Positions 40,802 through 44,130 of a stretch of 64,000 nt of DNA are shown here, piece after piece. Position 1 is the first letter of the stretch; each line of letters starts with the position of its first letter. The notes under the pieces are model-generated. The model did no database searches. It saw only the letters and a list, made by a program, of their open reading frames with translations, and was not told the origin of the DNA. Made by a program: the position numbers and the translations under genes. The stretch spans positions 1 to 64,000 of the forward strand of contig JAHLWZ010000793.1 of NCBI GenBank assembly GCA_020536535.1, written 5' to 3'. This DNA is from Pelomyxa schiedti. Its lineage: Eukaryota; Protista; Evosea.

Positions 40802-43800
40802 TTAATCAGAGCCAGGTAGAATCTCTACGGTGCCGGCAGTTCCATCCAAAGACAGAATAGAACCATCGTGAATAGCAGTCTGCCCGCTGGCTGCACCATG
40901 TACTCCAACGACCGCTGGAATTCCGTATTCTCTTGCTACAACGGAGCCATGGGTGAGATACCCTCCTATCTCGGTGATAAGCCCTCCTGCTATAAGGAAT
41001 AGTGGGGTCCAGGCTGGGTCTGTACCAGAGCATACAAGAATTTCACCTGAAGAATTATTAGAACAAGGAATATTAATCTGTGGGAGTATAGTATAGGCCT
41101 TGTTGTAGTTGAGCTTCCATGGGATTGTGAACTATTCTAGCTCGGCCTTTGATTACACCTGGAGACACACCAGTTCCAGTCATAACATTGCTGCCGGCAG
41201 TCAACGTGGGTCCCTGTGCATTTTTTTTTTTTCCCCTGTTAACAACATATAACCTGGAGGGTCTTACATCACTGTAGAAAGAACGGCCATCACTCATAAT
41301 GAGGCGTGGAACCTGTTTTCTCATTGATTCTCTCTGAAAAGAAGCCCGGCGTTCAGTGACAAGGTCTTGCACTTGTTGAGGAGTGATTTTGGGCACCCGG
41401 TCGTCTGATTGTAGCTCCGCGTAGGCCATAGCATCTAACTCGTGGATGCGCAAAAAGTTAATGTCATCTGGCCTTTGAAGTACCCCCCTGGAAGTGAGTT
41501 GACTTCCAATAGAATTCAATCCCTCTCGAAGGAAGCGCAAGCTCCTCATAAAAACAAGCTTGGGGTATTCCCGGAATCCAAAGAAGGTACGTGCATTTAG
41601 AGCTAATCGCCGTACAATATGTTCCCGGATAATTCCACACCATCCAGTTCTACGTTGTGCGAGGGCTTCTTTTTCTAGAGCTTGCATGGCAAACTCCGCT
41701 CCGCGGGCAAAGACAACATCGGGAGCAGAATCAAGAGGGATTTCCAAGAAATTCTTGAGAGTATAAAGAAGGGGAGTGGGATCCTCAAACCACCTAGTTG
41801 CACCCAAGTCAATTTCATTGGGGCAACGACCCCCATAGGCATCAAGAAAGTCTGTAAGAGCGTGCTGTGCAATGTGCCCTGGCAAACACTTGTTCATATA
41901 CATCTCTGATAGCGTTTCTGCTTTTTGATGCTTGAATATTTCTAGAGCTTGTACATCCTCTTCAGAGTGTGCTACGCGCATTGCTTTCGCAATTTGCCAT
42001 AATTGAAGATCCATCTCAGTAGTTCTTAGATGTGTTACAAATAAGACTGGTGAAGTGCAAGACACACGTGTTGTGAGGAAGCCCTCTTGTTATGTTATAG
42101 GGGAAGGTTGGATCCACAGACAGTTTATTCAACACAATCAAGGCAATACCCCCAGGGAGGATGGCTGGAACCAAGTTCAAGATCATCCAACTCAGAAATC
42201 CAGACAAGTGATACCGAAAATAGTGCTGGAGTTGTACGATATGCTGATAGGGATCGGTTTTCATTGGTGTAAGCATCTTCCTTGTTAGAGCGTTGTAGGT
42301 ATCTCCAGAATGGTAAACTCGCTGGAGAGCAGAGCCGGGGAACAACAAGTTGTATAAGACTTTTCTCCCAATGCGAGATCCTACTGACAAGAGCCTCAGC
42401 ACTTCACGTGGGGAGGGTTTCACCTTGGGAAACAAGTGAGGGTCATCTTTCTCCAACTTGCAAATGATCCTGTTTGCAACTGGGTCGATCGCTGAAAGGA
42501 AGTTATGTGCCATCTTGCTGCCAACTTTATTTCTAAGCATTGCATCAACTCGGATAAATATACGATCACCAGCTACTGTCCAATAATCTTTCCGTAGGCG
42601 CTCATCCAGTGACACACCCCCAATAAGGCTGTAAACAGATCCTGCACCATACTTAATTGCATCTTGCCCAATAGGAGTCACTGGACTTAGGACACCTTGG
42701 TGTGCTCCAAATGAGTACCACATCTTCAGGGGATTAGTTGAGTAAGGGGCGTCTAATTCGGGGATAGGATAGAGGGAGGTAATGGCACGGGATTGCAGAA
42801 TGCGGAATTTTCCATCGCTGGTAAGAGCCCATTCAATGTCTTGTGGAACCCCAGAGTATTCTTGCTGAATAGCACTGCATAGCCGAGCCAAGTCCAAAGC
42901 CTGGGTCTCAGTTAAAGATCTTGTGCTTGAAGCACTATCTACAGGTTTTTCCTCAACCCCACCTTCTGCACGGCTTGTAACCAGTACTTGCTTGGCTCCA
43001 GTTGTACTGTTCACCAACACCCATTGTCTTTTATCTACGACATAGTGATCTGGTTCCACTTTCCCAGAGACAAGAGCTTCTCCCAATCCAAATGTTGAAT
43101 CAATGACTATCTCAAAGCGGTTTCCTGTAAGAGGATTTGCAGTAAAGGCAACACCAGAGACGTGGGATTGCACCATTTCTTGCACGACCACCGCCATAGC
43201 CGCTATATCACTTGGGCTGCGGTTGTGGGCGCGGTATTCAGCAGCTCTTGGGTTCCACAAGCTAGCCCAACATTGAACCACAGCGGCAATAACCTGTTTG
43301 TTTTGGTGGAACATCAGCCCTTTCTCATCCCAATAGAATGTTCAAGGTTGTGATACCTGATGAACACCAATAGCGTTAAGCATTGTGTCATGCTGACCGG
43401 CAAAGGAGAGTTCTGGAGAATCCTCAACCGTCGCGGATGATCTTACAGCCACAGCAATATCTTTGTCACCAGAGAGTAATTGATACTCTCGGCCTATTTG
43501 TTCTTCAAGACCTTCAGGCAGCGGTGCCTATAGACACAGTATATTAAAAAAAAAAATTCCAAGTCCCACAATAAATTGTTATGTAATATTTAAATAACTA
43601 ACCTCAGCGAAGACCCTCCTCAGCTCCGCGAACCCCTCTTCCATCGAGGCCGCACGACTTGCGCGGGAGGATTTCTCCCCGGGGGCACCCTCACCGCTGT
43701 TGGGCGCCGAGTCCTCCCTTGCACTCGCACTCGCACTCGCACTCGCACTCGCACTCGCACTCGCACTTGCTGTCCCGGCCCCCGGAGCGCTGGTCCCAGT

Positions 43801-44130
43801 GGCACCGGGAGCCTCGCGCGGCTGCTGCGCAGGGCTGGGGGCGGCGGCGAGCTGCGCGAGGCGGACGATGGCGTCATGGGCTTGGGGGCTGGAGTTGACG
43901 AAGGCGACGTAAGCGGCGGCGGGAACCACGAACCCGCGGGGCACGTCGAAGCCCGAGGCGCTGAGCCGGACCAGGTTGGCCGCCTTGCCCCCGACGCTAC
44001 CCGCATCGCCGCACGAGGGGGAGGCTCGAGGCGGCGTTGTTGTGGTGGTTGCAGACGCCGTTGGTGTGGTGGTCGTGGTAGCTGGCGTAACGTCGTGGAT
44101 GGGCGCGCCCCCGAACCGCACAACCGACAT
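40802..44130 (-). CDS. Rifamycin phosphotransferase (RPH)-like PEP-utilising enzyme: ATP-grasp + substrate-binding + C-terminal phospho-His swivel domain; intron-containing
   Basis: VGGKAANL...[17 protein letters not shown]...[21 protein letters not shown]...[25 protein letters not shown]...[53 protein letters not shown]...[25 protein letters not shown] at 40802-40804. Confidence 0.85.
43721..43768. repeat. (GCACTC)n hexamer microsatellite, 7 perfect copies plus 1 imperfect, encoding (Ala-Ser)n on the - strand
   Basis: Directly visible in the sequence. Confidence 0.95.

Follow-up and report, generated by a model that had tools for sequence, protein, structure and literature searches.

Between positions 40802 and 44130 of a 64,000-nucleotide (nt) stretch of the genome of Pelomyxa schiedti (positions 1 to 64,000 of contig JAHLWZ010000793.1, assembly GCA_020536535.1; hereafter the window), the minus strand carries a single gene of five exons and four introns whose product resembles rifamycin phosphotransferase (RPH). 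The initial annotation of this stretch had described a eukaryotic, intron-containing homologue of RPH, had suggested that it was laterally acquired and had linked it to the detoxification of rifamycins or other antibiotics. The first two of these proposals are borne out here, while the third is not. We consider it likely that this is a functional nuclear gene of P. schiedti, of bacterial origin and derived most likely from Anaerolineae-like Chloroflexota, which gained introns, was duplicated, and encodes an ATP-dependent dikinase of the RPH superfamily whose substrate is probably not rifamycin. This reading is built on features that can be observed directly, namely the exon structure, the domain architecture, the conservation of the catalytic residues, the non-conservation of the rifamycin pocket, the affinity with bacterial sequences, and the presence of a paralogue that shares the introns.

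Gene structure, domains and catalytic residues

The gene model was obtained by six-frame reading, with positions 40500-44400 read in the three minus-strand frames (Table 1). Summed over the exons, the coding sequence measures 3096 nt including the stop, or 1031 codons, and the start codon is the first ATG downstream of an in-frame stop. Exon 1 holds both a Thr-rich N-terminal extension of approximately 40 amino acids (aa) and a low-complexity loop insert of approximately 60 aa. The codons divided by introns 3 and 4 allow the model to be compared with the family consensus, and both split-codon junctions fit it (GLPHN/T/TTEMDL vs GLPxNVTTEMDL; the exon 4-5 junction, LQQ/G/..., vs LxPGEILVCPGTDPAW). 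Because they match residue for residue, they fix both the short intron 3 and the GC donor of intron 4. Introns of the GC-AG type account for 1.59% of those in P. schiedti according to the genome paper, which does not mention the window gene (PMC8887013). No targeting signal was evident at the N- or C-terminus, as inspected by eye only.

Table 1. Coordinates of the gene, its sequence motifs and other features of the window
Feature	Positions	Strand	Description
Exon 1	43603-44130	minus	176 codons; start ATG 44128-44130; PPDK_N positions 3-41
GGKAANL (exon 1)	43972-43992	minus	ATP-grasp, P-loop-like; Lys22 equivalent kept
(GCGAGT)n hexanucleotide repeat (inside exon 1)	43721-43770	minus	Encodes (Ala-Ser)n; direct reading of sequence
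Intron 1	43528-43602	minus	75 nt, GT-AG, phase 0; position common to paralogue
Exon 2	43357-43527	minus	57 codons, ATP-grasp; PPDK_N positions 75-131, E 1e-14; VRSSATVED and FAGQHDT bear Arg117 and Thr136 equivalents
Intron 2	43294-43356	minus	63 nt, GT-AG, phase 0; position common to paralogue
Exon 3	42068-43293	minus	408 codons + 2 nt; remaining ATP-grasp (aa 1-173) and N-half of central substrate domain, with the long pocket loop
AHQG (exon 3)	42694-42705	minus	Invariant Gln
Intron 3	42025-42067	minus	43 nt, GT-AG, phase 2; position and phase common to paralogue
Exon 4	41099-42024	minus	1 nt + 308 codons + 1 nt; C-half of central Rph-type domain; TTEMDL (Thr523 equivalent), the two motifs next listed, then Lys-rich linker
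16-residue motif (exon 4)	41790-41837	minus	
REYPK (exon 4)	41559-41573	minus	Arg666/Glu667/Lys670 equivalents
VPRLIMSDG (exon 4)	41286-41312	minus	
Intron 4	41047-41098	minus	52 nt, GC-AG (non-canonical donor), phase 1; position common to paralogue
Exon 5	40802-41046	minus	Phospho-His swivel domain; 10-residue motif and 11-residue motif; TAA stop 40802-40804
11-residue motif (exon 5)	40922-40954	minus	Catalytic His
GC-rich islands, examples	1-600, 13701-14400, 23801-24500, 32801-33300, 38401-38900, 43603-44130		Last example is exon 1
Neighbouring open reading frame	45303-46142	plus	Divergent; Ser/Thr/Ala/Pro-rich start, weak DUF4062 start motif

All searches with the window gene were run exon by exon, and its bit scores are sums over exons. 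Pfam places PPDK_N in exons 1-3 (E 1e-5, 1e-14 and 6e-49) and the PEP-utilizers mobile domain in exon 5 (E 5e-20), while the NCBIfam models of the PRK06241/RPH group give collinear matches in all five exons, from model position 14 to approximately 890. The order found, an N-terminal ATP-grasp, a large central Rph-type domain and a C-terminal domain with the swivel His, is that of the RPH-like dikinase superfamily (PRK06241), and the initial annotation had described it correctly. The motifs that it quoted are likewise all present (Table 1). Among solved structures the top match of both exon 3 and exon 4 is Listeria RPH (5FBS/5HV1; E 3.5e-41 and 6.8e-16, respectively), and the match of exon 4 falls in the rifampicin-binding domain (residues 565-714). 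This similarity to RPH is far beyond chance. Rph_4th (PF27448) is present in the precomputed annotations of the paralogue introduced below and of all near relatives, and the ESM Atlas features of exon 4 lead to Rph_4th clusters (0.95-0.98).

When exon 3 is compared with 1.84 billion cluster representatives, the best match is KAH3757682.1, deposited as 'phosphoenolpyruvate synthase [Pelomyxa schiedti]', whose exons map exactly onto another contig of the P. schiedti assembly (C797). The family is represented in the genome by exactly two genes, that of the window and this C797 copy. All ten of the residues that handle phosphotransfer in Listeria RPH are identical in both amoeba copies: Lys22, Arg117, Thr136 and Glu297 of the ATP site, Gln337, Thr523, Arg666, Glu667 and Lys670 of the acceptor site, and His825 (RPH-Lm numbering; list of catalytic residues from PMC4844700). 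They were mapped by way of a Paenibacillus RPH that aligns end to end with 5FBS. The same ten residues are invariant throughout the superfamily, and the set consequently demonstrates a working dikinase scaffold without indicating its substrate.

A mechanism can be proposed by homology, modelled on that of Listeria RPH. The His of the 11-residue motif would take the beta-phosphate of ATP to give a phospho-His on the swivel domain, with the release of AMP and then of inorganic phosphate. The swivel domain would subsequently swing over to the central domain. There, Gln, Thr and Arg-Glu-x-x-Lys (REYPK), all conserved, would orient the phospho-His so that its phosphate can pass to a hydroxyl on the bound small molecule. 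We infer the activity of the enzyme, the kind of substrate that it accepts and its cellular role by analogy with this better understood relative.

Bacterial affinity and the rifamycin pocket

Other than its paralogue, the window gene has no close relative among the 1.84 billion cluster representatives. In a FastTree of the 150 best representatives the paralogue lies at a distance of 0.82 and all others at a distance of at least 2.19. The named near matches are bacterial, mostly from Anaerolineales and other Chloroflexota, followed by Actinomycetota and Paenibacillus, with identities of 33-46% over exon 3 and, for the paralogue, of 40-42% over the whole length. The best matches outside Pelomyxa are 37-48% identical, and the named ones among them are again mostly Anaerolineales/Chloroflexota. 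For the trees a quick search was made under LG+C20 PMSF, and in the full-length tree the Pelomyxa pair was represented by the deposited paralogue. In the exon 3 tree the pair (support 100) falls inside a set with support 95 that also contains an Anaerolinea group, on a stem of 0.95 substitutions per site. In the full-length tree the paralogue is sister to the same Anaerolinea group (approximate likelihood-ratio test, aLRT, 76), within a set with support 99. Nearest relatives that are bacterial fit the lateral acquisition put forward at the outset, and a bacterial origin is well supported by these comparisons. An Anaerolineae-like donor is our best guess from the same trees, though not a secure one.

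Word-index protein searches with the paralogue and with exon 3, covering proteins of 224-714 and 813-2588 aa, returned no eukaryotic relatives, and searches of the literature brought up nothing on RPH-like genes from amoebae or any other eukaryote. The best short match (P0002) was considered as a eukaryotic exon model and rejected, being a frameshifted bacterial gene. As a separate observation, the few taxa recorded for an ESM Atlas cluster of 109 proteins with Rph_4th and PEP-utilizers domains are half Eukaryota, with Arthropoda the commonest; the arthropod records could be further eukaryotic copies or contamination.

Could the gene then be a true RPH orthologue, giving the amoeba or its organelles or symbionts protection against rifamycins? 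The shared architecture would agree with this, as would the standing of Listeria RPH as best solved structure and the retention of equivalents of REYPK, Gln337, Thr523 and His825. We nonetheless regard this explanation as improbable. The NCBIfam equivalog model for RPH (NF041857) has a curated cut-off of 999 bits, and true equivalogs score 1221-1500, whereas the exons of the window gene reach approximately 442 bits (23+43+187+103+86, a rough sum) and the full-length paralogue 496. The closest bacterial relatives also fall under every NCBIfam cut-off. Moreover, nine RPH equivalogs from Bacillota form a clade with support 100, and the amoeba pair stands outside it in the exon 3, exon 4 and full-length trees. 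The RPH and Pelomyxa-like subfamilies are distinct, since a single genome carries both: Paenibacillus sp. GCM10012306 has a true RPH (1478 bits) as well as a Pelomyxa-like paralogue (583 bits). As judged from its sequence, the window gene is a homologue within the RPH superfamily but not an RPH orthologue.

The rifamycin pocket is also poorly preserved. The pocket loop, which runs from the PLG glycine to the AGG motif and bears the contacts Tyr351, Thr354, Ala357 and Met359, measures 14-18 residues in the equivalogs vs 31 in both amoeba copies, 25-32 in 113 other non-RPH rows and 20-29 in four more distant paralogues; the short loop, confined to the RPH clade, is thus absent here. The rifampicin contacts Gln336, Tyr351, Thr354, Ala357, Met359, Val368, Leu387, Leu478, Phe479 and Met673 correspond in the window gene to H, I, L, D, W, I, L, S, L and F, respectively, so that about two of the ten are kept (Val368, as Ile, and Leu387) and the changes include Q336H, A357D and M359W, in an alignment that crosses an indel and is unreliable around Leu478/Phe479, where statements about single residues are approximate. 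Over the central domain as a whole, identity to the RPH equivalogs is 16-27%. Rifamycins have bacterial RNA polymerase as their target, and an amoeba would have no obvious direct need of protection from them. What the amoeba gene has in common with RPH (RPH-Lm, PDB 5FBS/5FBT/5FBU/5HV1; NF041857; B. subtilis RphT) is the three-part architecture and the ten residues that handle ATP and phosphate; it differs in being eukaryotic, in its four introns and low-complexity inserts, and in the change of about eight of the ten rifampicin contacts. The proposed link to rifamycin or antibiotic detoxification is not supported by these comparisons, in which the close bacterial relatives behave alike.

Several points nevertheless weigh against the reading that we prefer, beginning with the indel in the pocket alignment. 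RPH binds rifampicin mainly by hydrophobic contacts, and several pocket mutants stay active (PMC4844700); given this tolerance, which favors the orthologue explanation, a changed pocket is no proof of lost rifamycin activity. The pair stands outside the RPH clade, but a sister position of the paralogue to that clade, in contrast to one within it, is not rejected by the approximately unbiased (AU) test (p 0.206), a result that also counts in favor of the orthologue explanation. The exon 4 tree leaves the Pelomyxa pair (support 100) unplaced within the non-RPH part, and a FastTree on 157 rows gave a different and unsupported neighbor. Finally, the gene neighborhoods of the closest Chloroflexota homologues are not conserved and offer no clue to the substrate, the neighbors there being mutually unrelated (DSP phosphatase, GHMP kinase, UbiA, ECF sigma factor, OAD-beta and histidine kinase).

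Shared introns and residence in the Pelomyxa genome

The two amoeba copies have diverged considerably. They are 67% identical in the ATP-grasp part of exon 3, 47% in each half of the central domain and 72% in the swivel domain. All four intron positions of the window gene recur in the paralogue, which has one extra intron in the region of exon 4. Because these positions are shared by two diverged copies, the introns predate the duplication, an old event in its own right. The same sharing argues for a long-resident nuclear gene rather than contamination.

Base composition offers a further view of this residence. Exon 1 has a guanine plus cytosine (GC) content of 0.71, and of 0.76 at third codon positions (GC3), vs a GC3 of 0.33-0.44 in the later exons. 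Approximately 15 GC-rich islands occur in the window (62-78% GC per 300 nt vs a window mean of 47%), some of them at the ends of other genes (examples in Table 1). Since exon 1 resembles these islands, the 5' end of the gene looks host-like. Such islands may characterize 5' exons or promoters throughout the genome.

An alternative that these data bear on directly is that the gene is a decaying or unexpressed relic of transfer, or a bacterial contaminant of the single-cell assembly. The low-complexity insert in exon 1 could be read in this way, as could the outcome of the word-index searches, which over 224-714 and 813-2588 aa turned up no protein model deposited for the window copy. We think this quite improbable. 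The frames are intact over five exons and the junctions match the family consensus; the two copies, now approximately 50% identical, both retain the full catalytic set; four spliceosomal introns are common to both copies; and the base composition is host-like, on an intron-rich contig. The preferred reading of a functional, long-resident nuclear gene accommodates each of these features, and it makes the locus a clear case of lateral transfer for the Archamoebae with unusually good internal evidence of long residence, in the form of four introns that two diverged paralogues have in common, together with the host-like 5' exon.

Two observations on the deposited models may be added. GenBank may lack an annotation of the window copy, or may have it under a different model. 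For the paralogue, the deposited model (C797:476-6321) is 1479 aa long, and its first approximately 540 aa, which derive from 13 extra 5' exons, are without a Pfam domain and include a transmembrane-like stretch and an Asn/Asp-rich run; this portion could represent a neighboring gene fused by the gene predictor.

Substrate, other relatives and neighboring features

The sequences closest to the amoeba pair are uncharacterized bacterial 'PEP/pyruvate-binding domain-containing proteins' of Anaerolineae/Chloroflexota, Actinomycetota and Paenibacillus, near PRK06241.1-3. They carry PPDK_N, Rph_4th and PEP-utilizers domains and share with the pair the long pocket loop and the overall architecture. 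They differ in being intron-less and approximately 885-915 aa long, whereas the amoeba pair has a long stem and a central domain that has diverged further. Many members of this bacterial subfamily are labelled 'rifampicin phosphotransferase' by the Joint Genome Institute (JGI). The subfamily is large and distinct from RPH, and KEGG-style labels of this kind are probably over-calls in resistome surveys.

Substrates of the scaffold extend beyond rifamycins, as is shown by YvkC of B. subtilis, a flavonoid phosphate synthetase with a broad flavonoid range (Hsu et al., 2023, as cited in PMC13099321). The description given there makes it a structural homologue of RphT acting on another class of hydroxylated small molecules. 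MarK, an aromatic kinase citing RPH, was considered as a relative and rejected, being of the unrelated fold UPF0261. For the amoeba enzyme, a hydrophobic or aromatic natural product or xenobiotic other than rifamycin would be the more likely substrate; the superfamily offers precedents in RPH, with rifamycins, and YvkC, with flavonoids. Divergence between the two amoeba copies is greatest in the central domain, as would fit substrate ranges that have moved apart.

One may ask what such an enzyme would do for its host. We offer, as a tentative suggestion that is more likely wrong than right, that a free-living anaerobic amoeba domesticated and duplicated a bacterial His-swivel dikinase, and that the two copies phosphorylate, and so neutralize or trap, small molecules (polyphenols or natural products of microbes, for example) that the amoeba meets in anoxic sediment or in the bacteria it preys on. 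If this were true, it would be the first eukaryotic enzyme shown to use the RPH mechanism. The novelty lies in a eukaryotic, laterally acquired addition to a known enzyme superfamily rather than in a new kind of system; the paralogue was already in GenBank, under the wrong name, and current understanding is not overturned.

The same scaffold serves ATP-driven condensation in PigC and RedH. An ATP-dependent condensing enzyme of this type, acting in a pigment or natural-product pathway, would share the superfamily and domain order of the window gene, and the PigC and RedH models do match all of its parts, albeit weakly. We judge this very improbable. The exon sums come to approximately 300 bits vs cut-offs of 1300/1350 (NF052631/NF052632), less than the RPH and PRK06241.1 models give; against the RedH model the paralogue reaches 344 bits, and no biosynthetic partner genes were seen beside the window gene.

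The weakest of the alternatives, to which we assign next to no probability, is that the gene encodes a phosphoenolpyruvate synthase (PEPS) or pyruvate phosphate dikinase (PPDK), as the GenBank name of KAH3757682.1 and the presence of PPDK_N and PEP-utilizers domains would suggest: PEPS and PPDK share the ATP-grasp and the phospho-His swivel chemistry, but their swivel domain is central, not C-terminal as here, and is followed by a PEP/pyruvate TIM barrel (PEP-utilizers_C, PF02896) that was found in none of the exons and nowhere else on the window contig or on C797. Outside the ATP-grasp and swivel parts, genuine PEPS models find no match, and the mis-annotation of RPH-type proteins as PEPS is documented (PMC4844700; PMC13099321). 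The initial annotation was therefore right to set the gene apart from both enzymes. The sole PF02896 locus of the genome lies on a third contig (C790:54637-55708) and is presumably its true PPDK/PEPS. The name 'phosphoenolpyruvate synthase' is a misnomer for the paralogue, and one that could mislead metabolic reconstructions of the anaerobe P. schiedti.

Around the window gene, the adjoining genes are intron-rich, and Pfam searches of the flanking open reading frames returned only a weak match to DUF4062; these neighbors give no hint of the substrate. This match belongs to the divergent plus-strand neighbor, which begins with a long Ser/Thr/Ala/Pro-rich run followed by the DUF4062 start motif (E 1.6e-4, under the Pfam cut-off). 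Elsewhere in the assembly, a third and distant ATP-grasp match with 30% identity and one in-frame TGA lies at C526:123085-123651. A eukaryotic small-subunit (SSU) ribosomal RNA match at C59:18787-23349 spans approximately 4.5 kb vs the 1831 positions of the model, which indicates a greatly expanded SSU gene.

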